Below are positions 3,621 to 33,330 of a stretch of DNA of 64,000 nt, piece after piece. The DNA is from Isurus oxyrinchus (taxonomy: Eukaryota): the NCBI GenBank assembly GCA_026770705.1, contig JANJGN010000052.1, positions 1,240,001 through 1,304,000 of the forward strand, written 5' to 3'. The stretch's first letter is position 1; each line of letters begins with the position of its first letter. Under the pieces are notes generated by a model. It saw nothing but the letters and a program-made list of their open reading frames with translations. It made no database searches and was not told where the DNA came from. The position numbers and the translations under genes were made by a program.

Positions 3621-3629
3621 ATTGGCTTT

Positions 3630-4510
3630 AAACTAAATAGAGTGTGGGGCGAATGTTTCTGGAGAAGGTATATGTACAGTTACAAACCAAAAGGATTTAT
3701 TAGCATTGCAGGATAGCTGTTTTGGCAATGATACCCAGTGTGTGACAGGAAGGGACACAGTGTCCAAACATAAAAATACATCAGCAAATAGTGTCAGAGG
3801 GGGGGAAATGATAAAAAGTCAAAATTAATGGCTCTTTACTTAAATGCACATAGTATTTGGAATGCTGACCTTTATTTCAAAGGGAATGGAGTATAAAAAT
3901 AGGGAAGTCTTGCTAAAACTATGCATGGCACTAGTTAGACCACACCTAGAATACTGTGAGCAGTTTTGGTTCCCTTATCTAAGGAAAGATGTACTGGCAT
4001 TGGAGGCAGTCCAGAGAAGGTTCACTAGGTTGATCCCAGTAATGGAGGGATTTTCATATGAGGAGAGGTTGAGTAGGATGGGCCTGTACTCATTGGAGTT
4101 TAGGAGAATGAGAGCTGACCTTATTGAAACATATAAGATTCTTAGGGTGCTTGACAGGGTAGATGCTGAGAGGTTGTTTCCCCTTGTGGGAGAGTCTAGG
4201 ACCAGAGGGCATAATCTCAGAGTAAGGGGTCACCCATTTAAGACAGAGATGAGGAGTTTCTTCTCTCAGAGGGTAGTGAATGTGTGGAATTCTTTACTGC
4301 AGAGAGCTGCAGAGGCTGGGTCATTAATTATATTCAAGGCTGAGATACACAGTTTTTTAATCAGTCAGGGAATCAAAGGCTATGGGGAAGAGGCAGGAAA
4401 GTGGAGTTGAGGATTGTCAGATCAGCCATGGTGTCATTGAATGGCGGAGCATAGTTGATTGGCCGAATGGCCTCCTTCTGCTCTGACGGCTTGTGGTCTT
4501 ATGGTCTTAT
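3630..4510 (+). mobile_element. CR1-clade LINE 3' end
   Basis: ORF2 C-terminus LVRPHLEYC...QRRFTRLIP...FFSQRVVNVWNSL; ends in a short (cttatggt)-like tail. Confidence 0.9.
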
Positions 4511-5096
4511 CACCCTCCAACAGTGCAGAGCTCCCTAATTACTGACCCTCCGACAGTGCAGCACTCTTCCAGTACTGACCCTTCGACAGTGCAGCATTGC
4601 CTCAGTACTGACCCTCCAACAGTGCAGAGATCCCTAATTACTGACGCTCCGACAATGCAGCACTCTTCCAGTACTGACTCTCCGACAGTGCAGCATTCCC
4701 TATGTACTGACCCTCCAACAGTGCAGCACTGCCTCAATACTGACCCTCCAACAGTGCAGCACTGCCTCAATACTGACCCTCCAACAGTGCAGCACTCCCT
4801 CAGTGCTGACCCTCCGACAGTGAAGTACTCGCTCAGTACTGACTATGCGGCAGTGAAGCTTTCACAGTACCCACCCACCATCAGTACAGCAGGTCCTCAG
4901 TACTCACCCTCCAACAGGGCAGCACTCCCTCAGTACTGACCCTCCAACAGTGCAGCACTCCCTCAGTACTGAACTGAAGAGTCTGCCTGAATTATGTGCT
5001 TTGTGGTGAAGGATTGATATTACACCTGTAACATTGTCAGGGTCTCTGAAAGTGCTTCACAGTCAATGTAAGTAACTGATCTTTATTTGTTTTTAG

Positions 5097-5363
5097 ATGC
5101 ACCACAGAATCTCTCAATTACTTTTCATGATATGATTAACGCTTCATGGATCAATATAATTGAGGGGAATTCTGCAGTGATAATCTGCTCTGTCGAGAGC
5201 TTCCCAGCTTCTAACCTGATGTGGCGACATCTTAATGTCCCAATGAACAGAACAAGTTCCAACAATGAGCTGTGGTTGGTGATTCCTCACGTTATATCCA
5301 GGGACACTGGAGATTATCAGTGTGTGGCAGAGAATGAACATGGAGCAGTGGACGGGTTCATAA
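5097..5363 (+). pseudogene. Siglec gene A, C2-set Ig exon 2, 3' end and donor replaced by a LINE
   Basis: ttttag|AT GCA CCA...IICSVESFPASNLMW...DTGDYQCVAENEHG. Homology to the paralogous exon (which ends ITITVE|gtgagt at 16098) stops at about 5363, where LINE sequence starts. Confidence 0.8.
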
Positions 5364-6420
5364 ACATTCTGTTTTTATTAGCTCATGGGATGTGGGTAGT
5401 GTTGACAAGACCAGAAATGATTGCCCATCTGTAACTGCCCCTTGAGAAGGTGGTGGTGAGCTGCCTTCTTTAACCACTGCAGTCCATGTGGTGTACGCAC
5501 ACCCACAGTGCTGTTAGGGAGGGAGTTCCAGGATTTTGTCCCAGTGATGGTGAAGGAACGGCCGATATATTTCCAAGTCCCAGGGCAGACCACCACCTCA
5601 AGTTCGCTTCCAAATCACACACCACACTGACTTGGAACTGTCTTGGTGGAAGAGGTTAAGGGTTTGGAAGGTGCTGTCGAAGGAACCTTTGTGAGTTGCT
5701 GCAGTGCATCTTGTAGATGGTGCACACTGCTGCCACTGTGTGCCAGTGGTGGAGGGTATGAACGTTTATGCTGGTGGATGGGCTGTCGATCAAACAAGCT
5801 GCTCCTGGATGGTGTCGAGCTTCTTGAGTGTTGTTGGAGCTGCACTTATCCAGCCAAGTGGAGATTATTCCATCACACTCCTGAAATGTGCCTTGTCCGA
5901 TGGTGGACAGGCTTTGGGGAGTCAGGAGGTGAGTTACTCACCACAGAGTTCCCAGCCTCTTACCCGCATTTGTAGCCACATTATTTCCTGTTGCCGGGAT
6001 GTTGCCAGGGCCAATAGTCTTTGCTGTATCCAGTATCATCAGCTGATTCCTGATGTCACGTGGAGTCAATCGAATTGTCTGAAAGCTGACATCTGTGATG
6101 CTGGGACCCTCTGGAGGAGGCCGAGATGGAGCATCCACTCAGCACTTCTGGCTGAACATGGTTGCCAATGCTTCAGCCTTGTCGTTTGCACTGATGTGCT
6201 GAGCTCCCCCATCATTAAGGATGGGGATATTTGTGGAACATCCTCCTCCTGTTAGATCTTTAGTTGTCCATCACCATTCATGACTGGATGTGGCAGGACT
6301 GCAGAGCTTAGATCTGACCCGTTGGTTGTGGGATCGCTTTGCTCTGTCTATAGCATGTTATTTCCGCTGTTTGGTGTGTATGTAGTCCTGTGTGTCACCT
6401 CAGCAGCTTGGCACCTCTGT
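5364..6420 (-). mobile_element. CR1-clade LINE fragment interrupting gene A
   Basis: Same family as 21390-23355 and 54751-56848; typical 3' end. Confidence 0.8.
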
Positions 6421-6609
6421 TATATGTGAATCCTCCTTATAGAAACCTGCATGTACATGGATATTATCAATAAATATTACATAGATATATGTTATTTGTA
6501 TAGACCTTTCATGCATAGACAATATCACTTCACAAGTTCAGAATTACTACATGTACACAGGGAACCATTCTCAAACTGTACCGGAGTCATTCATTGGCTG
6601 ATTTTACAG

Positions 6610-6706
6610 GGCGAGATTCCAATGAATGGAAAGCAGGATTGCTTGGAGCTGGAATCTGTTTGAGTGTTGGACTGAGTGGATTCTTCATCTTCAAGTGTGT
6701 GAGAAA
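6610..6706 (+). CDS. Siglec gene A transmembrane exon (no charge in core)
   Basis: ttttacag|GG...AGA AA|gtaagt, 97 nt: RDSNEWKAGLLGAGICLSVGLSGFFIFKCVRK; same length, phases and splice context as gene C TM exon 62194-62290. Confidence 0.8.
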
Positions 6707-7274
6707 GTAAGTGTGAAGGTTTAATTGGTTGTTTTTGAACATGTTTTCTTCAACCTTCTCTCCTTATAGAAAGAACTTGCATTTCTATAGCACCTTTCTC
6801 AACCGAAAACCCTTCACAACCCCTGAAGAGCTTTGATGTTCACTCATTGTTTAACATCTCATCCAACACTCAATGTTTCACAACTCAGTCCTGTAACAGG
6901 CAGTGTTGATCTGGACCATAAAATACCTTGTGACTTCCTGAGGATGTGAAAGGGGATATATAAATGAAGACATTTCTTTTGTTAGTGAATGCAATCTCTT
7001 TCCATTTTCAGTGTCTAACTCACTCTCTCTCTTACCTCCACTAATGCTCTCCTTCTCATTCTCTCTCTCTCTTATTCGCTCTCTCCCCAATCTCCACTAA
7101 TGCTCTCCTTCTCATTCTCTCTCTCGTCCTCTTACACGTTGTTCAGTCTCTCACAATTTTAAGGAGCGCTGAGCAACATCTGCTCCATCAGAAGATACAC
7201 CTCAACACCTGGAGTGAGCAGTGAATTGAAACTCGCTCAACGACTGTTCAGCTTTCCACAGGAATCACGACACA

Positions 7275-7665
7275 CTCAGGACACAAAGGGTTAACAGTTT
7301 GCTTACAACACAACACTAAGGCCCTACGTTTCAGTGAAAGGGTTTTCACAATTGTTCCCCAATTCCTGATTTGACTCACAGTGACACATCAACCCTTTCT
7401 CATTAAATACACAGAGGGAGCAGCACAGGAAGAGGTCATTCAGCCCAAGCAGAGCGTGTGGGCAGTTCCTCCCCAGGCGAGCATTCGGAAAGGTCCTGGG
7501 TAAGTAACGGAACGATTGGAATTCACTTCCACAACCAACACCATCCTTTGTTGATGTTGTGACTTTATAAAGACTGATTCCAATGATTGATGCCTTTGAA
7601 AGATTTCTACTGATTATTGAGATCTGGGTGTGAGACTCAAGTCTGTTGTACAGAACATCTTTCTG
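7275..7665 (+). promoter_or_regulatory. Displaced copy of Siglec promoter + non-coding exon 1 inside gene A
   Basis: Near-identical to 10840-11210 and 13060-13420; donor GG|gtaagt at 7500. Confidence 0.55.
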
Positions 7666-7679
7666 GGTAAATTGTGCAG

Positions 7680-7940
7680 ACAGGTTACACACAGTCTACG
7701 ATTATATTCCCTCAGGTCTAGGAGATTAAGGAGGGATCTAACTGAGAGATTCAAACTGATTAAACACTCGATAGGGTCGATAGAGAGAAGCTATTCCCTC
7801 GGGTGGGGGTGGTTGGTGGGGGTCGGGTGGAGTCCAGAACAAGGGGGCCGGAACTTCAGATTGGAGCCAGGCCATTCAGGGGTGATGTCAGGAAGCACTT
7901 CTTCACACAAAGGGGAGTGGAAATCTGGAACTGTCTCCCC
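7680..7940 (+). mobile_element. CR1 LINE fragment
   Basis: RRLRRDL...KHFFTQRGVEIWNCLP; related pieces at 53200-53720 (-) and about 63530-63615. Confidence 0.75.
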
Positions 7941-8010
7941 AATAATCAAACCCAACACCGAATACACATCATGTTGATTGTCACACTGTCCATTTCCATC
8001 TCTATTACAG

Positions 8011-8115
8011 AAGAGAGGCGAGGGGAAAGCAGGAATCAAATCGAACCATCATGTTGATGAATATCGAGGTCCTGTTTATGAAAACTGTGAGCGTGGTTGG
8101 GCTTTGAGGAATCAG
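8011..8115 (+). CDS. Siglec gene A cytoplasmic exon with YENC motif
   Basis: ctattacag|AAG...CAG|gttagt phase 0/0: KRGEGKAGIKSNHHVDEYRGPVYENCERGWALRNQ. Confidence 0.6.
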
Positions 8116-8249
8116 GTTAGTCACACACCACAGGATCCCCAGCCTCTCAGCTGCTCCAGTAGCCTGGTTATTGATATGGCTGCTCCAGTCCTGTATCTGC
8201 AATGTTTTATACAGTCACTCCCAAACCCAACCAAACTCACACCCAACAC

Positions 8250-8530
8250 CATTCAGTATCAATAATCAAACCCCGTTCAGTATCAATAATCAAACCCCGT
8301 TCAGAATCAATAATCAAACACTGTTCAGAATCAATAATCAAACCCCGTTCAGAATCAATTATCAAAACCTGTTCAGAATCAATAATCAAACTCCGTTCAG
8401 AATCAATAATCAAACCCTCTTCAGAATCAATAATCAAACCCCGTTCAGAATCAATAATCAAACTCCGTTCAGTATCAATAATCAAACCCCGTTCAGAATC
8501 AATAATCAAACCCTGTTCAGTGTCAATAAC
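8250..8530 (+). repeat. 24-bp minisatellite TCAGAATCAATAATCAAACCCCGT
   Basis: About 11-12 tandem units in the last intron of gene A. Confidence 0.95.
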
Positions 8531-8628
8531 TAATGTATCTATTGTGGGTGGAATTTTCAATTTGGATCAATAATACTAAACACTGATCACTCTGATTGTC
8601 ACTCTGATCATTTCTGTTTCTATTACAG

Positions 8629-8745
8629 AAGAAAGATGAGAAGGATCTGGAAATGAAATCTAACCGCGGAGTCAGTCCTGATACAGATGATGATCTTTAC
8701 GCAAACTGTGATTTTGCCAAGGATTCTGTTTATGGGAATTTATAA
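8629..8745 (+). CDS. Siglec gene A terminal cytoplasmic exon with ITIM (SVYGNL)
   Basis: ctattacag|KKDEKDLEMKSNRGVSPDTDDDLYANCDFAKDSVYGNL*; acceptor context paralogous to the 8011 exon. Confidence 0.7.
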   Translation, partial: KKDEKDLEMKSNRGVSPDTDDDLYANCDFAKDSVYGNL

Positions 8746-9864
8746 ACTGAGCAAGAATGAGACACACACAGTGTGGGGAGAATACAGAACGGGAGAATCA
8801 TTCAAAACTCCAATTTACCTTCCTAATATCCACAGGAACTCACTCCCAGGAAATAGATTTAAACCTCTTGATACAATCTGATGGAATTTCTTTGGAATGA
8901 TCTATCCAGGATGATTGTCTGTGGGTTTCAATTCGAACATCCTCCTTCAGAATTGTCCCTCCCTGTTGGAAACATCCTTCTCTCCATTCTGATTGTAAAT
9001 ATCTTTAGATATCGTTCGATGATGTACCAGGACAGAACGGACAAATTCAATCCCGTGTCCTTGATTATGAGTTAATTTTCATTCTGTTATTCACCTTCCT
9101 GTCTGTCAGTGTTTACAGAATATTCATCAGCCAGTGTAGACTTCAGGAAATGCAGGATCGGTGGATAATTGGAGCAGAGGAGATTGGCATAATTTACTCA
9201 GCATTTTGTAATCAAATGTATTTTCAGATATATATTTGGATTTTACACTTCATCGTTAAACAGCAAAACTAACTGCAATCCCAGAAACAGGGAAACAATT
9301 TGTTTGGAGATTTGAGAAATTCTCTGCAGCTCAGAGGATAACAGATGTGCTACAGTGCCACCACTGGTGGGAGGACATCATTTCAGCGTGACATGTTTAC
9401 ATTGATGTTGCCAATGAACATTGGAAATTATGATGTGAAAAATTGGTTGCAGGTTTATCTTCTTCAATATGTCATTGGATGGATGAGACAGCTTTGATAA
9501 CAGAATGAAATAGAGCTGCAATAAACCACCATTTTAGTCTTTCACACTTGGAGAGTACAATTTGCATCCATCCTGATGGTGAGTGGATGGGTGGACTGTT
9601 CGATCTGTTACAGATTACAGAGACCAACATCCTTGATCCTGGTTCTGCTCTATGTTTGATGACATTCTTGGATAAAAGATTGGGAAAATAAATAATCCTC
9701 CTGCATTGATCTGTAACTGGTCTCTCCATCTGTCAATGTCCTGAGGACAGAATTGGGTTTGAGGTCCAAATCATACACATGCTTTGACTGCCCATTGAAT
9801 AGGAACAGGAGGAGGCCATTCAGCCCCCTCGAACCTGCTACACAGGAACAAGAGAGTACCTGAA

Positions 9865-10065
9865 ATAAAAACAGAAAATGCTGGAGAAACTGAGTAGGTC
9901 TGGCAGCATCTGTGCAGAGATAAACAGAATTAGCATTTCGAGTCCGTATGACCCTTCTTCAGAGTCTCAAAGCAAAAACTCTGTTTCTCTCTTCACAGCT
10001 GCTGCCAGACCTGCTGAGTTAAGGCAGCATTTTCCGTTTTTATTTAAGATTTACACCATCTGCAA
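9865..10065. mobile_element. Short hairpin-type (Penelope-terminus-like) repeat
   Basis: aaatgctggagaaactgagtaggtctggcagc ... gctgccagacctgctgagtt inverted arms; related copies at about 14935-15075, 19895-19990, 26935-27085, 36200-36285. Confidence 0.55.
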
Positions 10066-10079
10066 TATTTATTTTTAAT

Positions 10080-10800
10080 GAGAGGAGGACATTCAGCCCC
10101 TCGACCCTGTTACGCAGGAACAGGAGGAGGCCATTCAGCCCACTCAAGCCTGTTACACAGGAACAGGAGGAGGCCATTCAGCCCCATAAGCCTGTTATAC
10201 AGGAAAAGGAGGAGGCCATTCAGCCCCTCAAGCCTGTTACACAGGAACAGGAGGAGGCCCATTCAGCCCCTCCAGCCTGTTACACAGCAACAGGAGGAGG
10301 CCCATTCAGCCCCTCGAGCCTGTTACACAGCAACAGGAGGAGGCCCATTCAGCCCCTCAAGCCTGTTACACAGGAACAGGAGGAGGCCCATTCAGCCCCT
10401 CGAGCCTGTTACACAGGAACAGGAGGAGGCCCATTCAGACCTTCAAGCCTCTAACACCAGAACGGAAGGAGGTCATTTCAGCCCCATGAGCTTGATGAAC
10501 AGGAACAGGAGGAGGTCCATTAAGCCCCTCAAGTCAGTTACATAGGAACAGGAGAAGTCTCATTCAACCACACGAGCATCTTATATAAGAACATGAGGGG
10601 GCCCAAACAGCCCCTCAAGCATGTTACACAAGAAGCGGAGGAGGATGTTCATTCAGTCCCTCGAGGCAATTATAAAGGAACAGGAGGAGGCCCATTCAGC
10701 CACACAAGCCTCTTACACAAGAACAGGAGGAGGTCCATTCAGCCCCTCAAGCCTGTTACACAGGAACAGGAGGAGGCCCGTTCAACCCCCTCGAGCTTGT
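10080..10800 (+). repeat. 42-43-bp minisatellite ACACAGGAACAGGAGGAGGCCATTCAGCCCCTCAAGCCTGTT (inverted copy 33715-33950)
   Basis: Tandem units resembling CR1 3' end sequence. Confidence 0.9.
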
Positions 10801-10839
10801 TGCATGTGAACAGTCGATGGCCCTTCAGCCACATTCTTG

Positions 10840-12650
10840 GCACGCAAAGGGTTAACAGTTTTCTAACTGTGCGAGGCAAAGAGCTGCTTTCTCACTTGGT
10901 ACTAACCACTTCCTCATTTTGTCTCACAGTGACACATCAACCCTTTCTAATTCAACACACAGAGGGAGCAGCACAGGAAGAGGTCATTCAGCCCAAGCAG
11001 AGCGGGTGGGCAGTTCCTCCCCAGGCGAGCAGTCGGACAGGTCCTGGGTAAGTAACGGAACGATTGGAATTCACTTCCACGACCAACACCGTCCTTTGTT
11101 GATGTTGTGACTTTATAAAGACAGATTCCAATGATTGATGCCTTTGAAAGATTTCTACTGATTATTGAGATCTGGGTGTGAGACTCAAGTCTGTTGTACA
11201 GAACATCTTTCTAGCTCAAGGGATGAGGGAAGAGCAGGGACATGAGCTTTGGGGTGTCCTAAGCAGGTGAAAGGCGATATAGAAATGCAAGTCCTTCATT
11301 GTTTTACTTTCTTAAAGCCTTGTAACAATCTGCAGAGCACCTATCATCCCACAGAGAATGAAATTAGTCTCTGAAGACATTGTCTAAAAGCAGTTCTGAT
11401 CTCTCGAGAGGTGTCGGACAAGAGGTGAGGTCTCATTAACTCATTTCTCTTTCACAGCTTGAGAACCAATGAAATACCTGGGAGTGGACAATGATCAGGA
11501 AATCTTACTTCCTCCTGTCACTTCTCCAAGGTAATATCATTGTCAGCTCGGACAGATTTATGGCTAATCATCTTTGTAAAACATAATTCTTATTGAGCTC
11601 TGATTGGGAACAGATTCAGCAGTGAGCCAGTGTACAAACTCACACCAAGTCCCATTCACCCATCACCCCTGTGCTCACTGATATACACTGACTCCCTGTC
11701 TGACAGCAGAATTGGAGGAGACCAGGGGACTTTGAGGTTTGCATGGTTGGAGGAGAAAGTGATTGGAGAAGAGGAATGGAGGGAATGGAAATTGAGGATG
11801 AGAGTCTTAAACTCGAGGCTCTGCTGGACTGGGAGCCAGTGCAGGTCAGCGAGTGGCAGAGGGTGTGAGGTGTCGAGTCGAGAAACAGTGATAAATACTG
11901 GGGGATGAAGTCTATCCTGATGCTTGGACTCCGATAGCAAAGGAATGAAATTTGTGTCTTTTCCTGATTTTAATCAGAATTTCCCATGAAGACAACACAG
12001 CAGCTCCTAGAATAGACAGGCTGTTCAGTGTCACACTTCCTGTCCATTCTCACCTTGCTAGAAACTTCAATAAGGGAGCAAGATAACTGAAAGAGAGAAG
12101 GAAGGTAAAGCTGTCCGTGTGTAAAGGTGTCAATATTCAGTTTGCATATTTGTCTTTCTCTCGACACATGCAGAGCTCAGGCTAGAGGCACTTTGTTAGT
12201 GTGTTTCACAGTCTCTGCTGGAGTAGGGTCAGTGCTGAGCTTGGGGACAAGTCAGTCTACAATGCTGCATCGGAATCAACAATACAACAATATGGGGTTT
12301 GGATCAGAAATAATCCCTTAGACAATGAGGATCCAAAGAGATTCCTTAGACAATGAGGATCCAAAGAGATTCCTTAAACAATGAGGATCCAAAAAGATTC
12401 CTTAGACAATGAGGATCCAAAGAGAATCCTCAGACAATGAGGATCCAAAGAGATTACTTAAATAATGAGGATCCAAAGAGATTCCTCAGACAATGAACAT
12501 ACAAAGTGCACCAATCAGATTGAATCAGATTAGCCATTCAGCTGTGTTGAAGAGCAGACAGGAATGTTAGGCTAATTAGTGATTCATGACGGTGATAATG
12601 GGGGGAGTTCTGAGGGCTCCTAATCCATTGTCCTGTCTTGTAAATCAGCA
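10840..12650 (+). pseudogene. Orphan Siglec 5' fragment: promoter, non-coding exon (donor 11048), leader exon 11458-11530, part of intron
   Basis: PU.1-like CACTTCCTCATTTT 10907-10920; ATG 11491 MIRKSYFLLSLLQ G|gtaat; 12163-12650 duplicates 450-935; no V exon follows. Confidence 0.7.
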
Positions 12651-13705
12651 CCTTAATACTGACCCTCCAACAGTGCAGCACTCCCTCAGTACTGACCCTC
12701 CAACATTGCAGCACTCCCTCAGTACTGATCCTCCAGCATTGCAGCACTCCCTGATTAATGTCCCTCTGACAGTGCAGCACTCCCTCAGTACTGACCCTGA
12801 AACAGTGGAGATCTCCCTCAGTACTGACCTTACAATAGTGCAACACTCGCTCAGTAATGACCATCCGACAGTGCAGCGCTTGCTCAGTACTGACACTGGG
12901 GAGTTTCAGTCTACTCTGTGGGGCAGACGTCCCCTGAATCGGGTCTTGAATCCCACAACATTCTGACCCCCTGAATTTGGCTGTGAAACCCACTGACCCA
13001 CAGGAGAAACTCCTGGTCAATGACTGTCCACCTGTGAGCAGAAATATCACCACAGGGTCAGGACACAAAGTTCACCAACATCTCAAAACATGAGCTGCTC
13101 TGTCACTTTGATCCAACTTCCTCATTTTGTCTCACAGAGACACATCAACCCTTTCTCACTAAATACACAGAGGGGGCAGCACAGGAAGAGGTCATTCAGC
13201 CCAAGCAGAGCGTGTGGGCAGTTCCTCCCCAGGCGAGCAGTCGGACAGGTCCTGGGTAAGTAACGGAACGATTGGAATTCACTTCCACGACCAACACCGT
13301 CCTTTGTTGATGTTGTGACTTTATAAAGACAGATTCCAATGATTGATGCCTTTGAAAGATTTCTACTGGTTATTGACATCTGGATGTGAGTCTCAGGTCT
13401 GTTGTACAGAACATCTTTCTAGCTCAAGGGATGAGGGAAGTGCAGAGACATGAGCTTTGGGGCATCCTGAGGAGGTGAAAGGTGCTATAGAAATGCAAAT
13501 CCTTCATTGATTTTCTTTCTTAAAGCCTTGTAACTCTCTGCAGAGCACCTATCATCCCACAGAGAATCAAATTCTTCTGTGAAGATATTGTCTAAAAGCT
13601 GTTCTGATCTCTTGAAAGCTGTCGGACAATAGGTGAAGTCTCATTAACTCCTTTCTCTTTCACAGCTTGAGAGTGAGAAGTGGATGGACTATCTGGGAGT
13701 GGACA

Positions 13706-13745
13706 ATGATCGGGAAATCTTACTTCCTCCTGTCACTTCTCCAAG
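13706..13745 (+). CDS. Siglec gene B leader exon (coding part)
   Basis: Acceptor ttcacag at 13665; MIGKSYFLLSLLQ G|gtaat, phase 1; upstream non-coding exon donor at 13256 and PU.1-like ACTTCCTCATTTT at 13116-13128. Confidence 0.75.
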
Positions 13746-14435
13746 GTAATATCATCGTCAGTATGGACAGATTTATGTTTAACAGTTTTTGTAAAAGATC
13801 ATTCTTATCTCTTTATCTCTGTAACGTCCTGCAACTCAACCAAACAACTTCCCAGATCTCTGTGTTACTCCAATTCCGGCCTCTTGACCATCCCCCGATT
13901 CCCATCACTCCAATAGTGGCGGCCGTGCCTTCAGCTGCCTGGGGCCTGAGCTCTGGAATTCACTCCCTAAACCTCGGCGATGGAGGAGATCAGAGGGTTT
14001 CATTTTACTGAGAATCACCACGACCACATCACAGCTGCAGTCAGAATAGACAGAGAGTCCAGCCCTCACACTTCCTGCACAGTTTCACCATAGCAACCAC
14101 AATAAGGAAGTAAAATAACTGAAAGTTAAACCGAAGCCAAACCAGTCGGTGTAGAGAGATGAGATGTTTACACAGTTTCCCTGTGTATCTTGTAGACACT
14201 GTGTTGGGTGGAAGACTGGCTTCAGTAAACAGAGTCCTGAGGACCATGAGCCAATGTAGAATGAACTTGTCCACTCCTGTGTCCAGGATTCTCTTCCATC
14301 CATTGTGAAACCTTGGGGACTTCCTTGTGTGTCCTGTAGATGGTCCTCACTGCAGCCACTGTGCCCCAGTGATGGAGGGGGTGGATATCGAGTCTAGTGG
14401 ATTGACAAACCATCCAGAGTTAAATATTGATATTT

Positions 14436-14467
14436 ATATTACCCTGTAACCCGGCTTCACGGTTCTG
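14436..14467 (+). pseudogene. Siglec gene B V-set exon remnant (about 348 bp deleted)
   Basis: Flanks align to gene A 1288-1534 and 1883-2110; acceptor and nearly the whole V exon are missing, donor at 14468 retained. Confidence 0.85.
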
Positions 14468-15326
14468 GTAAGTGCTGCGTTATAATTACTCAACAATTCA
14501 CATCCAACACTCAATGGGAAATAACACTAACTGTGACGTTTACATATTAACACAAAACACAGCTTATTATAACACACTGTCTGATTCTCAATAACCTGGT
14601 GATCGCTTCCAGTTCAGTCCTAAAGCAACCTCTAATACTCACTTTAATATCAATGATGAAAAGCATTAACTGTATTATCAGGTTATCCATTCCCATCAAT
14701 CTCTCCTGTCCTGTTTAAAAGTCTGACGTATCGATAAAAGAAAGATGTGCATTTCTGCTGCGCAATTTACCACCTCAGGAGGATCCAAATCCCTTCACAG
14801 CCAATGAAATTATTCCTGAATTGTAGTCACAGATGTTAAACACAGCAGGCAGTTTGTGCACAGCAAGATCCAACAAACCACAAGGTGATAAATCACCCAG
14901 ATCACTGAGGAAATGAGAAGCCAGTGAACTCAAACCTCTGGTCTGATGAAGAGTCATACGGACTCGAAACGTTAACCCTGTCTTCCTCTCCACTGATACT
15001 GTCAGACCTGCTGAGTCTTTCCAGCAATTTTTGTTTTGGTTTCAGATTTCCAGCATCCGCAGTATTCTGCTTTTAACTCCAATCTCTGGTCTGAGCCTCT
15101 TCTCTCATCCAGTGTTCTCAATTCACATGTCTCGGAGTGAACGTGTATTAAGCTGAGAGACAGAAACACTACTGCCAAAGAGCAAGAAAATCTTTCCTGA
15201 TCATTGTAACCTCTCAGTTCTGATATCATCCTTGTAAAAGTGCTTTCTCTTGTGGGACTGTGATTTCTATTTGAACTGATGGTTCACGTTATATTTCTCT
15301 AAAAGGATCCATTCTCTGTCTGTTAG

Positions 15327-15623
15327 ATTTCACAGATAAACCCATGATATTCCCTGCTGAAATTATTGCAGGAAAGCGTGTGGATGTAAGCTGCACCTTC
15401 AACACAACGTGCAATGGAACAGCAGCACCTGTCTTAACCTGGGACACTCCCACTGACGTACCTGGATCAGTCTCAAACACTGTAACTCAGCATGGTGTCA
15501 CTCTGACCTATACTTGTGTTGTGACCCTGATTCCATCACTCAAACACCACGGACACACTCTCAGCTGCAGAGTGAGATATCCATCTGTTTCATCGGAGCG
15601 GACCCTCGTACTAACTGTGCAAG
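15327..15623 (+). CDS. Siglec gene B C2-set exon 1 (intact)
   Basis: 297 nt, about 6 substitutions versus gene A 2314-2610; AG/GT intact, phase 1/1. Confidence 0.85.
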
Positions 15624-15945
15624 GTAATTACATACACTTTCATTCTACATCAGCACTCCCTCAGCGCTGACCCTCTGACAGTGCAGCCCGTTCTCAGTAT
15701 CCACATTCTCAGACCTCTCTAAGTGCTTCAAAGTCGATAGAAGTTAATTGATCTTTATTTGATTATTGCTGAATGAAGAGACAAGCTGTCTAAACTTTAC
15801 ATCTCGCACACACCATTCTCCATGGCAACACCTCCACCTATCAGAGACCACTTGCCAACCAATCAGCACTCTCTTCCCATTAAGTATAAATTGTTGTTCA
15901 CTTTCTGTTGGTAATCCTGTGAACGGGCTTCTTGATTCCTGCCCT

Positions 15946-16098
15946 GACATCTTAATGTCCCAATGAACAGAACAACTTCCAACAATGAGCTGTGGTTAGT
16001 GATTCCTCACATTACATCCAGGGACACTGGAGACTATCAGTGTGTGGCAGAGAATGAACATGGAGCAGTGGAGGGATTCATAACCATCACTGTGGAAC
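15946..16098 (+). pseudogene. Siglec gene B C2-set exon 2, 5' half and acceptor replaced by a ~185-bp insert
   Basis: HLNVPMNRTTSNNELWLVIPHITSRDTGDYQCVAENEHGAVEGFITITVE|gtgagt; homology to gene A breaks at about 15761-15945. Confidence 0.8.
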
Positions 16099-17776
16099 GT
16101 GAGTGTACACAGACTTCAACATCTCTCGCAGATTCGAACACGACACAAACACCCTCAAACATACACATCTAAGTAGACACATGCAGACACACATATATGA
16201 CCACACAGAAAGACACACTCACACACAAACACACTAACACACACTCCCCTGTGGGCTACCTGACCTCCCTCAGTACTGCCCTGGAGAGTTGGCCTGAATT
16301 CTGGGATTTGTGTTCCCATTCATATTTATGCAAGAATATGGAAATTACAAAGTCTATTACAGACAGTCAGATGCATAGAGACACTCACAGATACTCTCTG
16401 CCTCTCCAACTCTCTCTCTCCCTTTAAGAAGCTTCCTGAAAGCTCACCCTTCGAACAATCACCGGTCCCAAATCCTCCTTATCTGATTTGTGTGATTTTC
16501 TTTGTGTATTTGAGAGTAAGCGAGAGGTGGAGAGGTTTAGGAGGAGAATTCCTGTTGGTGAAAAGCTTACATCATGTTCTCACCTTTCCAGTGCCCATAT
16601 TTTACATGATGTCCAATGTCCTTGTTCATAATGGGAATTGCCTATGTAAACATCACGCTGTAGTTACAGTCTCCTACCAGTGGTGGCATTGTAGCACTTA
16701 ATCCTTGTGTTTCCCAGCTTTTCAAGCAACTCCACTTCCCAGTTTGCTCCACAAGCTGTGAGTTCATTGGAATTCAATTATTTCTCAAACGGTAGATTTG
16801 ATGTCATTTTATTGAAAACTTCCTCAGTGCCTCCCTGAAGGGTTGACACTCTCTGGGAAGCAGGAATAGGCTGGATGTTGGGGAGTTCATCTTTTCCCAA
16901 AGAGTAGTGATCCTCGGGAATGTGCTGTCAGTGGGTGTGGTGGTTGCTGATTCTCTGTCGCCTTCAAGAGGGATCTGGAGTGGTTACTGACTGGGGGAGA
17001 GATCATGGAAACGGAGAATGATACAGCACAGGAGGAGGCCATTCAGTCCATTGTGCCTGTGCCAGGTCTTTCAATGTTCTATCCAATCAGATCCAATAAC
17101 CACCATTCCAATTTGCCACCATCTTCCTCCTTTAAGTATTTATCCAATTTCCCTTTTGAAAGTTCCTATTGAATCTGCTTCCACCGCCCTTTCAGGCAGC
17201 ACCTTCCAGATCACAACAACTCGCTCTGTCAAAACAAATTCTCCTCATCTCCCCCTTCGGTTCGTCAATCTGTGTCCCTCTGGTTACCGAGCCTCCTGCC
17301 CCTTAAGTACATTGATACTGTTCACCTCAACCACTCCCTGTGGGAGCGAGTTCCACATTCTCCCCTCTCTCTGGGTAAAGATTGGAACTGTTTATTAAGT
17401 GAGGCCTGTAAGTCCGTGGGGGAGTCCATCTCGATCCTGCCCGATTCGTACACGCGTCCGAGATGGATTTCCACCCTGCACTAAACGTTTCCAGAATTTT
17501 CTACAGCACAATCCTGTACACAACGATTGGGAGAAACATTGGACAGGGAGTCCAACAGCACAATGATCCATTCTCACCAATGTTCCACGCTAAGGGGAAA
17601 GTTCCGATTGTCCACTCTTAGAGTGTTTACAATGAAAACATTCATTCCACATTGAATCCCAGTGGATGGGTCAATATTACAACAAATGTTGCAGTGATAT
17701 GAAGCTTGATTGTTCAGCCAGAGTGAGAGATTGAAAGCGGAGAGTCAGTGATGATTTCTTTCTGTGTGTTCTCTAG

Positions 17777-17916
17777 ACAGTGGAGGAGAGATTCTGCACG
17801 TGATCCTGATCCTGGGAATACGAGCTGTGATATTCCTTGTGGCTGTGGTTATCACTATCGCTGGAGTCTGTGTCTGGGAGAGACAAACAGTGAAAGCAAG
17901 TCGACAGACTGTTTGA
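17777..17916 (+). CDS. Siglec gene B transmembrane exon, activating type (Arg in TM, short Tyr-free tail)
   Basis: ctctag|AC AGT GGA...: SGGEILHVILILGIRAVIFLVAVVITIAGVCVWERQTVKASRQTV*; CGA (Arg) at 17821-17823; phase 1 matches upstream Ig exons. Confidence 0.8.
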
Positions 17917-19035: not shown

Positions 19036-21389
19036 TGTTCTGTAGATATTTAAAGATTAAAATTCTTGTTTTGCTGCAAAATACTTGGCTCAAAGACATT
19101 ACTTCATATTGTCATGTTTTCCAATCAGATGAATTCCTCTGTCCATCTTTATAATAGAAATTTCCAATGTAAACATGTCACATTGTAGCTGCACACACTT
19201 GCCAGTGGCTGGTGTGATATCAAAGCTGTCTTGCTGTCGAGAAACAGCGAGAAATATTCCTGTTGTGTGCATGAACTTCATGTTAGCATGAGACACAGGC
19301 ATCAGATACAATTTTGTGCAATTTGTACAATGTTCTTTAGACAGCGGAGCACTCCCTCAGTACTGACCCTCCAACAGTGCTGCACTCCCTCAGTTCAGAC
19401 CCTCCTACAGTGCAGCACTCCCTCAGATCAGACCCTCCGACAATGCAGCACTCCCTCAGTTCAAACCCTCCGACAGTGCAGCACTCCCTCAGTTCAGACC
19501 CTCCGACTTTGCAGCACTCCCTCAGTTCAAACCCTCAGACAGTGCAGCACTCCCTCAGTTCAGAACCTCCGACAGTGCAGCACTCTCTCAGTTCAGACCC
19601 TCCGACAGTGCAGCCCTCCCTCATTTCAGACCCTCCGACAGTGCAGCACTCCCTCAGTTCAGGCCTCCGACAGTGCAGCACTCCTTCAGTTCAGACCCTC
19701 CGACAGTGCAGCACTCCCTCAGTTCAAACCATCCGACAGTGCAGCACTCCCTCAGTTCAAACCCTCCGACAGTGCAGCTCTCCCTCAGTTCAGAGCCTCC
19801 GACAGTGCAGCACTCCCTCAGTTCAGACCCTCCGACAGTGCAGCACTCCCTCAGTACTGAACCTCCGACAGTGCCGCACTACCTCAGTACTTCTCTGCCG
19901 ATGCTGCCAGACCTGCTGAGTTTTTCCAGGTATTTCTGTTTCTGTTTCTGTTTTGGATTTCCAGCATCTGCAGTTTTTTTGCTTTTAGTGCTGGGCAGTT
20001 CCTCAGCAAGGATTCGGGCCACAAAACATTGCGAGTGCTGTGGATCTGCGCCACGATTTAGAGAGCTGTGCTTGGCATGCCTATTCTAGTCCCAGTCCAG
20101 TGTGGTGGGGACAGCCTGGCAGTCCTGGGTTGGTGGTGCCCAGCATGGTGTGAGTGACGTGGTCAGTCCCTCACACACGTCGGTCCTGGGGGTGGGTGGC
20201 TTGATACTAGGCCGCAGGTGGCACAATCCCAGTCAGGGGAGGCATCTGCAGCCTGTCAGTGGGGAGCAGGTAATATAGAGAGTAGGGGTGGGGGTGGGAA
20301 TCGAGGGGGGCCGGTGGTCTCTGTAAGTCACAGTACAATGGGCCTCTAGTTGGAGAGAGGTCAGGTCTACATGGGGCATTGGGATGTCAACATCAGACAG
20401 TCTAGGGAGGAGGACTGGGATGTCAACCCCGAACACAATAAGATCAAGGATTAGAGAGGAAGGGAGGAGACTGATTGGAAGGAGGGGAATGTGCACATTA
20501 TGCTCCTCCAGCACGATGGGAGGGACTGTGATGGTTACGGGGGTGGGGGGGGTGAAGTGGGAGGGGATAGACGCTTACCTGGTGGTATTGCCTCAGCCTC
20601 ACCCTTTTTCAAGCTGATCCAATGTCGCAGTTGAAGAATAAGCTACAAAACAAATTGGCAGGGGAGGTCTCCCAGGGCCTGTGGGAGACATCACCCACTG
20701 CATCTTTGGCCTGTTTGAAGGGGCACCCGAACAATTCCGGCTTTTCCAAATGATGAGGAAGACACAGCTGCACCCCGAGTCCCCTACTGGGGATCCAGAA
20801 GGTTGCAATAGCGCTGCGAGGGACTCATGGGCTCCACAGTGACTCCCTAATTAGCGACTGGAAGGTTTATGTTCATTTATCTTTATTATCCGTTCATATT
20901 GAGCAATGGAGCTCCTGATCTGACACCTTTCTGTACCTCGTCCAATGCTTCTGTTATCAGGACTTCCACATCGATGTGAAAGAGCCATGATGATAGCAGA
21001 CAGTCGCACAATGGGAATGGCACTAGGCCAGTGATCCAGAGGCCCAGGTGAATGCTTTGGAGGTACGGGTTCAAATCCCACCACGGCAGCTGGAGGAATT
21101 TAGATTCGATTAATCAATAAATTTAATTGATTGATACATTTTTTTCTTATTCATTTCAGGGATGTTGGTGTCGCTGACTAGGCCAGTATTTGTTGCCCAT
21201 CCCCATTTGCCTTTGAGAACATATGGATATCTGAGTTAGGATCAGGAGTAGGTCACTCAGTCCCTCGAACCTGCTCCGCCATTCAGTAAGATCATGGCTG
21301 ATCTGATTGTCACCTCAACCTCACATTCCTGCCTACCCCCAATGACCTTTCACCCCATTGTTAATCAAGAATCTATCTAGCTCTGTGGA

Positions 21390-25383: not shown

Positions 25384-25842
25384 ACACAATCACACACATT
25401 CACATTGACACGCACTGACAGTCACACATACACACACACACGCTGACACAATCACACACATTCACATTGACACACACATATTGACAGTCACACACACACA
25501 CACACACACACGCTCATAAAGACAGGCACAAACACAGTTACGTGAGGTGAATAGTGTCGATGTATTTAAGGGGAAGCTGGATAAACACACGAGGCAGAAA
25601 TGAATAGAAGGATATGGTGATGGGGTGAGATGGAGAAGGGATGGGCGGAGACTCGTGTGGAGCAGAAACACCAGCATGGAGCAGATGGGCCGAATGGCTT
25701 CATTCCCTGCTGTAAAACGCAGGTAAAGTTTCAGTTGGAATTAATGAACAGGGCCTGTGTGAAATAGATTGCTAAGCAGTAGATAAGGAGGGGAGAGGCT
25801 GTGGCATGGTGCAGGATGACCTTGCGTGAATGAGGCCAGGGT

Positions 25843-25959
25843 CTAATATCTACAGCAGAGACCACAAGTCTCATTTGGTCCTCTCCAATTACAGCAGTTA
25901 CAGCAGAATCTGCAGAGCTGCTGTCTGCCCATTCTCTTCTGGCGCTGCAGCAAGGAGCC
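25843..25959 (-). CDS. HAMP: Hepcidin exon 3 (furin site + mature peptide)
   Basis: Acceptor cctgcttttccag then GGC TCC TTG ... TGC TGT AGA TAT TAG; 39 codons including stop; 8 Cys. Confidence 0.96.
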   Translation of the reverse strand, partial: GSLLQRQKRMGRQQLCRFCCNCCNWRGPNETCGLCCRY

Positions 25960-28900
25960 CTGGAAAAGCAGGAGGACAATAGGTGAGAACATTCCGGAAA
26001 GAAAGAAGGCATCATTTCAATCAGGCGCGTCATTGGAAGGAGGATGGCGCATTTCTATAGCGCCTTTCCCCTCCTCAGGATGGCCCAAAGTGTTCCACAG
26101 CTGATGGAAGGACTTTTTCTGAAGTGAGCTCACCGCTGTAATGTAGAAAACGCAGCAGGCAATTCACGCACAGCAAGATCCCACAAACAGAAATGTGATA
26201 ATGGCCCCGATTTTCAGTTTTTTACCAATGTCAGTTGAGGGATAAATGTTTGCCCCAGGAAAGCAGACATAACTGCATCCCATCCACCCCCCACCACCCC
26301 CTCCACACATACACCCAACTCCTGAAACACTTCATTTAAATTGTGGCCATGGAATCCTCTACATCCATCTGAGAGGGCAGATGTTGTCTCAGTTTAACAT
26401 CTCATCTGAAAGACAGCGCCTTCAACAGTGCAGCACCCCCTCAGTACTGACCCTCCGACTGTGCAGCACTCCCTCAGTACTGACCGTCTGACAATGCAGC
26501 ACCCCCTCAGTACTGACCCTCCGACTGTGCAGTCCCCCGCCGGTACTGACCCTCTGACAGTGCAGCACTCCAAGACTGACTGTCTGACAATGCAGCACCC
26601 CCTCAGTACTGACCCTCCGACTGTCCTGCCCCCCCGCTGGTACTGACCCTCCGACAGCTCGGTAATTTCTCAATTACGCCTGGTGGTCCTTTTAACTCAG
26701 AGCTGAGAGTTGCAGAGAATCGAGCAGACACCCTGAACTGACACTTGCAGTGCAAGTACTGGGAGTGCGCTGGTCATTATCATGCTGCTGTCTGTGGGAT
26801 CTTACAGTGCGCCAATGGCTGATTCTTTTCCCACAGTACATCAGTGACCTCACATGAAAGAAAAAAAGCACTTGATTGTCTGCGAAACAGTTTGGGACGT
26901 CCTGATGTGTTGGAAGGCGCTAGAGAAATGCAAGAGTTGACGTTTCGAGTCCTCATGACCCTTCTGAGGACTCGAAACGTCAACTCTTTTCTTCTCCGCC
27001 AATGCTGCCAGACCTGCTGAGTTTTTTCAGGTAATTCTGTTTTTGTTTTGGATTTCCAGCATCCGCAGTTTTCTTTGTTTTTATAGAGAAATGCAAGTCC
27101 TCTTTGTCTTTCACTCGATCCTCTAAGGTGTCTGTTGATTAACCAGCCTCTCGGTGTATGATGTAGGCCTGGTTATAAACAGTTAGAAGGATCAAATATC
27201 AAAAGTGCTTTGGCTGACAGTCAAACCGATTGTGCATTCGGAGAGATTAGATACGGTCTGCGCACAATGACTCCAGTCTCTGGCACTGACTGCCGCCTGG
27301 GGTCTCCCTTCCACATAACACTCACAACTTGCATTTACACAGCGCCTCGGACATTGCAAAATGTCCCAGCCCACATTACCGGAGCGTAAATCAGAGAGAA
27401 GTCTAACACTGAGTCACATATGGAGATATTAGGGATAGGTGACCAAAAGCTTGGTCAAAGATGTCAGTTTTTAAGGAGCGTCTTAAAGGAGAGAGAGAGA
27501 GAGAGAGAGAGGCAGAGAGGTTAAGGGAGGGTATTCCGGAGCTCAGGGCCCCAGGCCGCTGAAGGCACGGCCACCAATGGTGGAGCGATGGGGATCAGGG
27601 GGACCCGGGAGATGCAGTAATGTCAGAGATTTTGGAGGAACATCGGGACCGGAGGAGGTGTTCTCCTGCTCCATATCTCTCTCTCTCTTCCTCTCTTCCA
27701 CTCCTCCTCTCCCTGTCTCTCTCTCTCCTACTCTTCCTCTCAATTGCCCTCTCTCCCAATCTTTCTCTCCTCTCTCCCTTTTCCTGTCTCTCTCCCTCTC
27801 TCTCCCCTGTCTCCTTCTCCCACTCTGTATCTCTCCCTCTCTCTCACACTATTTTTGTAACTTTCGCTCACTCTGTAACTCTCCCTTCCCTGTTAATTTC
27901 TCTCTCTTGGACAATCTCTCTTCCCTTTTCACTTTCCCTCACTCTGCATCTCTTTAATTTCTCCCTCTGTCACTCTCTCCCACCTATGTTCTTTCCCTTT
28001 CATCCCTCCCCGTCCCACTCTGTGTCTCTCTCTTCCAATCCCTCCCTCCCCCATTCCATCCCTCTCTCCGACTCTCGACTCCCAGCCTCTCTTTAACCCA
28101 CTCCCAGGCTGGATCAGTCTCCCTCTCACTATTCCCGGCGTGGGTTACATTTAAAATTCCTGTGGGGATATGTTCACTTCCTTGGAATTGCCTCTTCCCA
28201 GCTTTGCAAAAAAAGGGTGGGGGGGGGGGTCTCGATTTCAAACATGCCTCCTGAGTATAACCGAGACAGACTGCCACTGAAATCAGCTTGAAATCAGAAA
28301 ACTTTCTGTGGAAGAAACGAGCAGGGAGAAACCTTAAAATAAGGAATGAATTTCCACCTACCGTGTCCGGGGAATCCACAGATTTCTCAATCGTCGAAGA
28401 ACCTAAAGCAGTGTCAACCTGCAAAAAGAAAGAATTTATCAGGGAGAAAGTGAGAGGAGGATTGAGGGAGAGGGAGAGAGAGAGAGAGAGGTACAGGAGA
28501 GAGAGGGGGAGGAGGACAGACTTGCATTTCTCTAACGCCTTTCACCACATCCCAAAGCATTTCACAGCCACTGAAGGATGTTTTTGAAGTGCACTCACAC
28601 TGTAGGAAATGTGGCAGCTGATTTGTGCACAGCAAGATCCCACAAATAGCAATGTGATCATGGCCTAGATCATCTGTTTTTGGTGATGTTGGGTGAGGGA
28701 TAAATATTGGTCCCAGGACACCGGGGAGAACTCCCCCTGCTCTTCCTCCAAATAGTGGCTGTGGGATCTTTCACACCCGCCCGAGAGGGCAGACGGGGGA
28801 CTCGGTTTAATGTCTCATTCAACATTGTTGTGCTCCCTCAGTACTAACCCTTTGACACTGCAGCACTCCCTCAGTACTAACCCTTCGATAGTGCTGCACT

Positions 28901-30384
28901 CCCACAGTATTGTCCCTCCGTCAGTGCAGCGCTCCCTCAGTACTAACCCTTTGACACTGCAGCACTCCCTTAGTATTAACCCTTCGATAGTGCTGCGCTC
29001 CCTCAGTACTGTCCCTCCGTCAGTGCAGCTCTATTTCAGTACTAACCCTTCGACACAGCAGCACTCCCTCAGTACTGACCTCCGACAGTATAGCACTCAC
29101 TCAGTACTGTCCCTCCAATAGTGCAACACTTCCACACTACTGACCCTCTGACAGTCCAGCACTCCCTCAGCACGGAGTGTTGACCGACGTTATGGGACTG
29201 AATTCCCTGGAGTGAGACTCAGACCAGAGATTTAGGTAGGGTTGTTCCGGCTGGAGGAGGTTACAGAGATAGGGAGGGTTGTAGAGGCTGTAGGAGGTAA
29301 CAGAGATAGGGAGGGTTCTAGAGGCTGTAGGAGGTGACAGAGATAGGGAAGGTTGTAGGGGCTGTAGGAGGTTACAGAGATAGGGAGGTGAGTAGGGGCT
29401 GTAGGAGGTTAAAGAGATGGGGGGGGTTGTGGGGGCTGGAGGAGGTTACAGAGGTAGGGAGGGTTGTAGAGGCTGGAGGAGGTTACCAAAATAGATACTG
29501 TTGTAGGGGCCATAGTAGGTTACAGAGATAGGGAGAGTTATAGTGTGGAGAGGACGTTATAGAGTTCATGAGCATTGTAGGGGCTGGAGGAGGTTACAGT
29601 GATTCTGAGGGTCGTGGGGCCTGGAGGAGTTTACAGAGATAGGGAGGGTTGTAGGGCCTGGAGGAGGTTACAGAGATAGGGAGGGTTGTAGGGTCTGGAG
29701 CAGGTTACAGAGATAGGGAGGGTTGTAGGGTCTAGAGGAGGTTACAGTGATCATGAGGGTTGTGGGGCCTGGGGGAGGTTACAGAGATAGGTAGGGTTGT
29801 AGGGGCTGGAGGAGGTTACAGAGATAGGGAGGTTTATAGGGGCTGGAGGAGGTTACAGAGATAGGGAGGGTTGTAGGGGCTGGAGGAGGTTACGGAGATA
29901 GGGACAGTTGTAGGGGCTGGAGGAAGTTACAGAGATAGGGATTGTTGTAGGGGCTGGAGGAGGTTGCAGATATAGGGAGGGTTGTAGCGGCTGGAGGAGG
30001 TTACAGAGATAGGGAGGGGTGTAGGGGCTGGAGGAGGTTACAGAGATAGGGAGGGTTGTAAGGCCTGGTGGAGGTTACAGAGATAGGGAGTGGCTGAGGA
30101 GGGATTGAAAACAAGAATGAGAATTTCAGGGGAAACGACAGAAGGAAATGATGTTAAATTCATAGAGGGCGACAATATTAAAGGCACGAACATAATAATA
30201 TCAAACTGCGGAAGAGACCAGTCTATCTGGGTGGTAGACGTAGAGTCATGTGCAAGAAACACCTCACCCAGAGGGACATCTCTTAGCTTACCCTCGACAA
30301 GGAGAAGAAGTGACTCAGCTGCAGGGAGAGCAGCAAAGTCAGAGTGAACAAGACAAGTCGCCATTTCATCTGGGAGCTTCCCAT
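25843..30384 (-). CDS. HAMP: Hepcidin-like prepropeptide, 3 coding exons: 30384-30292, 28418-28362, 25959-25843 (88 aa)
   Basis: Spliced product MGSSQMKWRLVLFTLTLLLSLQLSHFFSLSR|VDTALGSSTIEKSVDSPDT|GSLLQRQKR-MGRQQLCRFCCNCCNWRGPNETCGLCCRY*. Signal peptide, acidic propiece, furin site RQKR, hepcidin 8-Cys pattern C-x2-CC-x-CC-loop-C-G-x-CC. Both introns are GT-AG and phase 0. TATA upstream. Confidence 0.93.
28362..28418 (-). CDS. HAMP: Hepcidin exon 2 (propeptide)
   Basis: ttctttttgcag|GTT...ACG|gtaggt; 57 nt, phase 0/0, VDTALGSSTIEKSVDSPDT; size typical of hepcidin exon 2. Confidence 0.8.
29240..30090 (+). repeat. 37-bp G-rich minisatellite in hepcidin intron 1
   Basis: GGAGGGTTGTAGGGGCTGGAGGAGGTTACAGAGATAG tandem units. 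Confidence 0.95.
30292..30384 (-). CDS. HAMP: Hepcidin exon 1 (signal peptide)
   Basis: ATG at 30384 (second in-frame ATG at 30369), hydrophobic core LVLFTLTLLLSL, donor AGG|gtaagc phase 0. Confidence 0.85.
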
Positions 30385-30454
30385 CTCTGCCTGTCTCTTC
30401 TGATCTTCTGGCTCTGCTTTGATGCTTTGGTTTGTAACTAGAGGAGCTTCCTGC

Positions 30455-30530
30455 TCTTATACCTGAAACACTTGAAGGGGACAGCCGGGGGCGGGTTGCT
30501 GTGTGGTATCACACCCATTTCTGGATATTG
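30455..30530 (-). promoter_or_regulatory. Hepcidin proximal promoter
   Basis: TATAAGA at 30461-30455 about 75 bp upstream of ATG; GC box GGGGCGGG near 30488-30495; RUNX-like TGTGGT 30502-30507; degenerate STAT-like ATCCAGAAATG (minus) near 30516-30526. Confidence 0.55.
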
Positions 30531-32719: not shown

Positions 32720-33330
32720 GTAACCTCCTCTCTCTGTCCCTTTCCTCCAGCCCCTACAACCCTCCCTATCTCTGTAACCTCCACCTGCCCCTACAATCCT
32801 CCCCATCTCTGTAACCTCCTCCACCTCCCACAACCCTCCCTATATCTGTAACCTCCTTCACAAGCCCATACAATCCTCCCTATCCCTGTAACAACCTCCA
32901 GCCCGACAACACCCCTATACATGTCACCTCCTCTAGCCACTGTAACCCTAATAATCTCCCAAGCCTCCACCAGCCTTGACAATCCTGCCCATCTCTGTAA
33001 CATCCTCCAACCACCACAACCCTCCCTATTTCTGTAATCTCTTCCAGTCCCTACAACCCTCCCTATCTCTACAACCTGCTCCACCCCCTGCAACTCGCCC
33101 TATCTCTGTGTCATCCTCCAGCCCCTACAACCCTCCCTATACCTGTAACCTCCTCCAGCCCCTACAACCCTCCCTATCTCTGGAACAGCTTCCAGCACTT
33201 ACAACCCTCCCTATCTCTGTAACCTCCTCCAGCCCCTACAACACTCCTTATCTCTGTAACCTCCTCCAGCCCCTACAACCCTCCCTATCTCTGTAACCTC
33301 CTCCAGCCCCTGTAACCCTCCCCATCTCTT
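32720..33330 (-). repeat. Same 37-bp minisatellite, inverted
   Basis: CTATCTCTGTAACCTCCTCCAGCCCCTACAACCCTCC units. Confidence 0.9.

Follow-up and report, generated by a model that had tools for sequence, protein, structure and literature searches.

The first nine residues of human hepcidin (DTHFPICIF) suffice for ferroportin degradation (PMC7915682), and in sea bass Hamp1 regulates ferroportin but Hamp2 does not (PMC5665920). The second hepcidins found in fish are considered not to regulate iron, and hepcidin, together with the ferroportin cysteine that binds it, makes its first appearance in the cartilaginous fishes; some of these have two ferroportins (Nemeth and Ganz, PMC8235187). Within this group, hepcidin has been detected in plasma of the nurse shark by proteomics, and the annotation offered 'no whale shark ortholog' (PMC9207270). 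Here we analyzed a stretch of 64,000 nucleotides from the shark Isurus oxyrinchus (assembly GCA_026770705.1, contig JANJGN010000052.1, positions 1,240,001 to 1,304,000 of the forward strand; hereafter the window), which carries on its minus strand an intact gene of the hepcidin family (HAMP). The gene product keeps the hepcidin scaffold but has lost the residues of the hormone epitope. We consider it likely (probability about 0.6), mainly by analogy with the teleost hepcidins, that this is a strongly transcribed HAMP-family member in the ancestral hepcidin-Siglec neighborhood, one of multiplied copies, which was released from the hormone role and most likely serves in defense.

The gene is composed of three exons separated by phase 0 introns with GT..AG borders, and the exons join (31 + 19 + 38 residues) into an 88-residue prepropeptide plus stop (Table 1). 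The initial annotation had proposed the same three phase 0 exons and a prepropeptide of this length ending RQKR-MGRQQLCRFCCNCCNWRGPNETCGLCCRY, and its coordinates and letters all hold. It had also described the gene as not recovered by the open reading frame (ORF) track, which is right for the joined product, but exon 3 lies inside an ORF of 49 residues and exon 1 inside one of 33 residues. The layout is that of the hepcidin family, i.e., three exons with the mature peptide wholly in the third and an R-x-K/R-R site ahead of it. Homology and domain searches were run exon by exon, and exon 3 alone matched the Pfam Hepcidin family (PF06446) with 31.2 bits against a gathering score of 27 (E = 2.7e-7), its residues 5-37 aligning to positions 24-52 of the 53 in the profile. 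The start codon at 30384 has a G at both -3 and +4 and is preceded by a TATA box, and the RNA contig depth is still high across the bin 30345-30480, consistent with a 5' untranslated region (UTR) of about 45-50 nt. No canonical AATAAA was seen in the sequence of the 3' UTR (25560-25842), which enters an interspersed repeat.

Transcription was profiled with four public runs (X1-X4) from one sample of organism A, and the contigs of X1 and X2 were aligned to positions 25560-30480. These runs contain 0.59-0.82 of the 31-letter words that were sampled from exon 3 and the adjoining 3' flank, with X1 having the highest share (0.82). The two junctions that the initial annotation had predicted (28362>25959 and 30292>28418) were both present, to the base, in spliced RNA-like contigs. 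The joint 25959/28362 (raw 25958>28361, cut +1) was found in nine X1 contigs and the joint 28418/30292 (raw 28416>30290, cut +2) in 11 X1 and two X2 contigs, in each case with CT..AC on the plus strand, i.e., GT..AG on the gene strand. Loose contig ends at 25960 and 28361 also read into the neighboring hepcidin exon. In X1 the exon bins had depths of 1.5e5-8.3e5 and the unique intron bins of about 1e3 (exons 100-800 times introns), and X2 was alike. The hepcidin transcript is clearly abundant, as judged on a scale of contig depth that cannot rank expression. Contigs spanning the introns differ from the hepcidin locus at only 0-6 places, which indicates that this locus or a near-identical one is present as precursor RNA.

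A minor form of the transcript includes an extra exon derived from a repeat in intron 2. The depth of its joints was 510 for 25959/27014, and 844 in X1 and 98 in X2 for 27168/28362, compared with 2475 + 13928 for the main 25959/28362 junction, i.e., the form accounts for a few percent of the junction depth. Because a stop stands at the 10th codon of the extra exon, this isoform is non-productive, and its product would lack the mature peptide.

Table 1 Features of the hepcidin gene and of its checked neighbor, in window coordinates.
Feature	Positions	Strand	Evidence or remarks
TATA box (TATAAG)	30456-30461	-	77 bases 5' of the hepcidin ATG; sequence read
Exon 1, coding, 31 residues	30292-30384	-	Hydrophobic core (putative signal peptide) and start of propeptide; donor gtaagc
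Intron 1, 1873 nt	28419-30291	-	Largely repeats
Exon 2, 19 residues of propeptide	28362-28418	-	Phase 0 at both ends; polypyrimidine tract and ag before, gtaggt after
Intron 2, 2402 nt	25960-28361	-	Rich in interspersed repeats
Minor extra exon, 155 nt, repeat-derived	27014-27168	-	In intron 2, flanked by ag and gt; spliced contigs
Exon 3, coding, 38 residues and stop	25843-25959	-	End of propeptide, furin-type site, mature peptide; ttttccag before
RQKR proprotein-convertase site (R-x-K-R)	25933-25944	-	Abuts the mature peptide; cleavage predicted from the family
Mature peptide, 29 residues, eight Cys	25846-25932	-	Translation; Pfam match
Enlarged hairpin loop NWRGPNET, Cys14 to Cys23	25867-25890	-	N-E-T sequon at 25867-25875
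3' UTR, at least this far	25560-25842	-	RNA contig depth 6.5e5-8.3e5 over 25560-25889 in X1
Siglec-type V-set exon	1526-1996	+	Siglec-5/7/8, MAG, CD33 and sialoadhesin chains, E 4e-15 to 4e-11
Siglec-type C2-set_2 exon	2331-2759	+	Pfam score 36.8 bits (cut-off 21); matches to CD33 and MAG chains

Several sequence variants were seen at this gene. Junction contigs carry G>A (plus strand) at 28363, a CpG site, so that exon 2 ends in the codon ATG (Met) instead of ACG (Thr); in both X1 and X2 the depth of this form exceeds that of the reference. A minor variant, A>C at 28417, replaces GTT (Val) by GGT (Gly). The two may be alleles or differences between paralogues. A low-depth DNA contig from run X12 (organism D) spans 25560-26203, hence exon 3 together with the sequence on either side, with 22 differences and 39 gap letters relative to the window, among them a deletion of 17 bases at 25690 within the hepcidin 3' UTR; its source is either a close relative or another copy.

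The mature peptide begins MGRQQLCRF and has cysteines at positions 7, 10, 11, 13, 14, 23, 26 and 27, in the order C-x2-CC-x-CC-loop-C-x2-CC. Translation of exon 3 bears out the earlier description of a peptide with eight cysteines, the first at position 7, that lacks His3/Phe4 and is longer than usual at 29 residues. Arg3/Gln4 stand in place of His3/Phe4 (or Leu4), and the NH2-x-x-His metal site (the amino-terminal copper- and nickel-binding motif, ATCUN) is absent, residue 3 being Arg. The six-residue arm before the first cysteine is kept, as well as Leu6-Cys7-Arg8-Phe9. The extra length comes mainly from the loop, which has eight residues compared with four or five in the other hepcidins. 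A single-sequence AlphaFold2 model was helical (predicted local distance difference test 71, predicted template modeling score 0.36), which is unreliable for a disulfide-knotted peptide modeled without an alignment.

We compared this peptide with human hepcidin-25, sea bass Hamp1 and Hamp2, and the hybrid striped bass hepcidin 1S6W. Residues 3-5 are Arg-Gln-Gln here, His-Phe-Pro in human, His-Leu-Ser in sea bass Hamp1 and Ser-Pro-Gly in sea bass Hamp2, and the loop from Cys14 to the next cysteine is NWRGPNET (8 residues) here, HRSK (4) in human, RGNKG (5) in Hamp1 and PNMSG (5) in Hamp2. A loop of eight residues is absent from all four of the hepcidins compared. The nearest solved structure is 1S6W, with which the CRFCCNCC core is identical; at the loop the alignment opens a gap of four residues in 1S6W and of one in the query (net +3). 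Two properties that had been put forward as marks of an antimicrobial type, or as arguments for the type of the peptide, do not discriminate. The peptide is cationic as claimed (4 Arg and 1 Glu, net charge about +3), but sea bass Hamp1 (2 Arg + 2 Lys) is more basic than Hamp2 (2 Arg; PMC5665920). Likewise, the first cysteine at position 7 says nothing about type, since six residues precede it not only here, in human and in sea bass Hamp1 but also in sea bass Hamp2. Counted by hand, the identities to Hamp1 and Hamp2 are about equal (14-15 of 26), and the peptide therefore cannot be typed as either.

With human hepcidin-25 and teleost Hamp1 the gene shares the three-exon structure, the mature peptide in exon 3, the signal peptide, the propeptide and the R-x-K/R-R site, together with the order of the eight cysteines, the six residues before Cys1, the Leu/Ile6-Cys7-x-aromatic9 pattern and the Siglec (MAG/CD22-type) neighbors. 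It differs from them in having Arg3/Gln4/Gln5 rather than His3/Phe4(Leu4)/Pro5(Ser5), in the missing ATCUN site, in the loop (8 residues compared with 4 in human and 5 in sea bass), in the N-x-T sequon, in the length of 29 compared with 25-26 residues, and in being apparently one of several copies. The teleost Hamp2 type (sea bass Hamp2 and 1S6W) shares with it the CRFCCNCC core, a similar CG-x-CCR-aromatic end, the lack of the His3-Leu4 motif, the occurrence beside a canonical copy and the multiple gene copies, and differs in its five-residue loop without a sequon. The teleost Hamp2 clade arose by duplication within the ray-finned fishes. A gene of a cartilaginous fish cannot belong to that teleost-specific clade, and its likeness to Hamp2 would thus be a functional analogy, with any shared role being convergent. 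The nurse shark plasma hepcidin is likewise a cartilaginous-fish hepcidin that is made and secreted there, for which no family expansion or long-loop form was reported (PMC9207270); this comparison is by description.

Evidence for a second, conventional hepcidin came from the same sample. One X1 contig, with its end at 25930 (the last base of the Met codon after RQKR), follows the propeptide of this gene and then diverges (25900-25930). The 30 diverging letters, reverse-complemented and read by hand in the exon frame, give S-H-L-S-I-C-M-Y-C-C right after RQKR-M; in the other rows of the contig-end table, the letters displayed are those adjoining the boundary. If the shared Met is taken as residue 1, the paralogue has His3, Leu4, Ile6, Cys7, Tyr9, Cys10 and Cys11 and an NH2-x-x-His site, and its start almost equals the tested start of sea bass Hamp1 (PMC5665920). 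Since this contig reads RQKR-M and then the canonical start, its sequence indicates that a conventional Hamp1-type paralogue, with a common propeptide and a different mature peptide, is co-expressed in the sample. The number of distinct X1 contigs per junction (9-11) would also fit several expressed variants. No second hepcidin exon or partial duplicate was found in the window. The gene hence appears to be a diverged member of a hepcidin family, and not the sole hepcidin of the genome, a possibility that had been named as one part of what would refute the specialization.

The genomic context of the gene was also profiled. A Siglec gene (1526-17916, plus strand), whose exons were checked at 1526-2759, lies about 8-24 kb from the hepcidin 3' end. 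In the human map, HAMP adjoins MAG and CD22 (USF2-HAMP-MAG-CD22). Because the Siglec neighbor echoes this human linkage, the gene is likely to belong to the ancestral hepcidin locus. Other ORFs lying between the genes matched no Pfam domain, and the ORFs sampled at 57043-62290 gave no Pfam match.

These features suggest the following course for the gene and its product. As observed, a TATA promoter drives transcription, and three exons are spliced together. As in the rest of the family, the 88-residue prepropeptide would then be secreted, a furin-type convertase would cleave it behind RQKR, and the mature peptide would take up the hepcidin hairpin, held by four disulfides. Compared with the hormone type, the mature peptide is altered in its Arg3/Gln4, the absent metal site, the eight-residue loop and the N-x-T sequon. 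Given that DTHFPICIF suffices on ferroportin and that only the His3-Leu4 type of sea bass acts on it, the canonical copy is probably the ferroportin-regulating hormone, and the copy in the window would be free for another role, most likely host defense, either directly antimicrobial or immunomodulatory. Such a role would parallel that of teleost Hamp2 yet stem from an independent duplication. We further propose, tentatively and at somewhat less than even odds, that cartilaginous fishes independently multiplied hepcidin, interleaved with Siglec genes, into a canonical x-SHLSIC hormone copy and long-loop, His3-less and possibly N-glycosylated defense copies. If true, this split would mirror the teleost Hamp1/Hamp2 division by convergence, in the oldest lineage with a hepcidin-ferroportin pair.

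A defense role has to be weighed against the view that the peptide is itself the main iron hormone, or one of several, with an unusual N-terminus that binds a co-evolved ferroportin of early jawed-vertebrate origin. That view would account for the conserved HAMP-Siglec neighborhood and for the very high transcript depth, which is expected of liver hepcidin, and the ferroportin cysteine that binds hepcidin has its earliest occurrence in the cartilaginous fishes, among which some possess two ferroportins (PMC8235187). The six-residue arm is complete, and Leu6-Cys7-Arg8-Phe9 matches the Leu6-Cys7-Arg8-Trp9 of sea bass Hamp1, a pattern with which the peptide may still bind ferroportin; shark ferroportin could also have co-evolved with its ligand. 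Both points weigh against our preferred reading, and so do some properties of the data. The canonical paralogue is represented by a single contig end (38 letters, of which 30 are displayed), and its locus is not in the window; the deepest contigs could derive from a near-identical copy and not exactly from this locus; and the run kind 'RNA' is a guess of the tool, although the joints and the contrast between exon and intron depth fit RNA and not DNA. The 1.2 kb promoter has no STAT or BMP-responsive element (BMP-RE) consensus (TTCNNNGAA and GGCGCC, respectively), which speaks against an iron hormone, but weakly, because fewer than 0.3 matches to each are expected by chance (0.28 and 0.18). His3 and Phe4/Leu4, which lie within the minimal active epitope, are replaced by Arg and Gln, and a paralogue starting SHLSIC is expressed in the same sample, both of which speak against the hormone role. 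On balance, we regard the iron-hormone role as unlikely.

The N-E-T sequon raises the prospect of an N-glycosylated, hepcidin-like secreted peptide that would be neither a hormone nor a classical antimicrobial but would act in a new way, directed at a receptor or as a carrier, with the glycan-bearing loop as the functional novelty. The sequon sits in an eight-residue loop that the human, sea bass and bass hepcidins lack, and the peptide is predicted to pass through the secretory pathway; however, chance sequons are common, and one beside a disulfide-bonded cysteine in a small knotted peptide may stay unused, which makes such a role rather improbable. It is also conceivable that the gene is a young duplicate heading for loss, intact and transcribed by chance and with no selected function. 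The repeat-rich, duplication-prone region and the existence of a non-productive isoform would be in line with decay, but the loop insertion preserves the reading frame, and the gene retains all eight cysteines, the convertase site, the signal sequence, the TATA box and both splice sites undamaged. It is also very highly expressed, with only a few percent of the junction depth going to the non-productive form. We consider decay highly improbable. The reading of the gene as a diverged copy released for defense is the one that we prefer.

With the scaffold kept, the hormone epitope lost and a canonical copy alongside, that reading would show that the split between hormone and defense hepcidins arose more than once. 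The peptide is also a natural experiment on the residues that ferroportin requires in hepcidin, and its eight-residue loop is a new scaffold variant for peptide work. A small three-exon gene of this kind is missing from one shark genome annotation (PMC9207270) and may be missed in others.

Searches of databases and the literature added little to the comparison. A protein-index search with exon 3, extended upstream, returned no candidate with three shared 5-residue words; since teleost hepcidins with the CRFCCNCC core were not returned either, this is no evidence of novelty. A HMMER search of 1.84 billion representatives gave no match at E <= 0.001, for which library a query of 38 residues is underpowered, and the best score in the ESM Atlas (0.76, an unnamed plant cluster) is below its own reliability line. 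In the literature searched, which covered few subscription journals, shark hepcidins are nearly absent, the matches being a review and the work on nurse shark plasma; neither a shark hepcidin family, a long-loop form nor this peptide was described, and its loop and core motifs were not found. Hepcidin in cartilaginous fish is already known, and this copy stands out by its loop and sequon, which may or may not matter.

The window is rich in tandem repeats, some of which surround the hepcidin gene. Arrays of a 37-bp unit lie in opposite orientation at 29233-30090 (23 copies, in intron 1) and 32743-33329 (16 copies, about 2.4 kb upstream), and the two form a large inverted repeat with exon 1 and the promoter between its arms. 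A 33-bp unit (CAGTGCAGCACTCCCTCAGTACTGACCCTCC and its complement), typical of shark genomes, forms short tandem arrays across the whole window, including both hepcidin introns (2837-3618, 4512-4972, 19340-19888, 26444-26657, 28833-29170, 41544-41966, 57405-57630 and 60449-60800). Masked runs of N occupy 40798-41041, 43145-43279 and 53278-53418. A satellite of 2.5 kb at 36745-39236 consists of about 33 copies of a CT/CA-rich unit of 70-72 bp, with higher-order periods of 142-214 bp. A further array is a minisatellite of 7.3 kb at 45938-53201, with about 620 copies of the 12-base unit CCTCATCCCCCT and an extreme strand skew, which yields a spurious ORF of 2444 residues.

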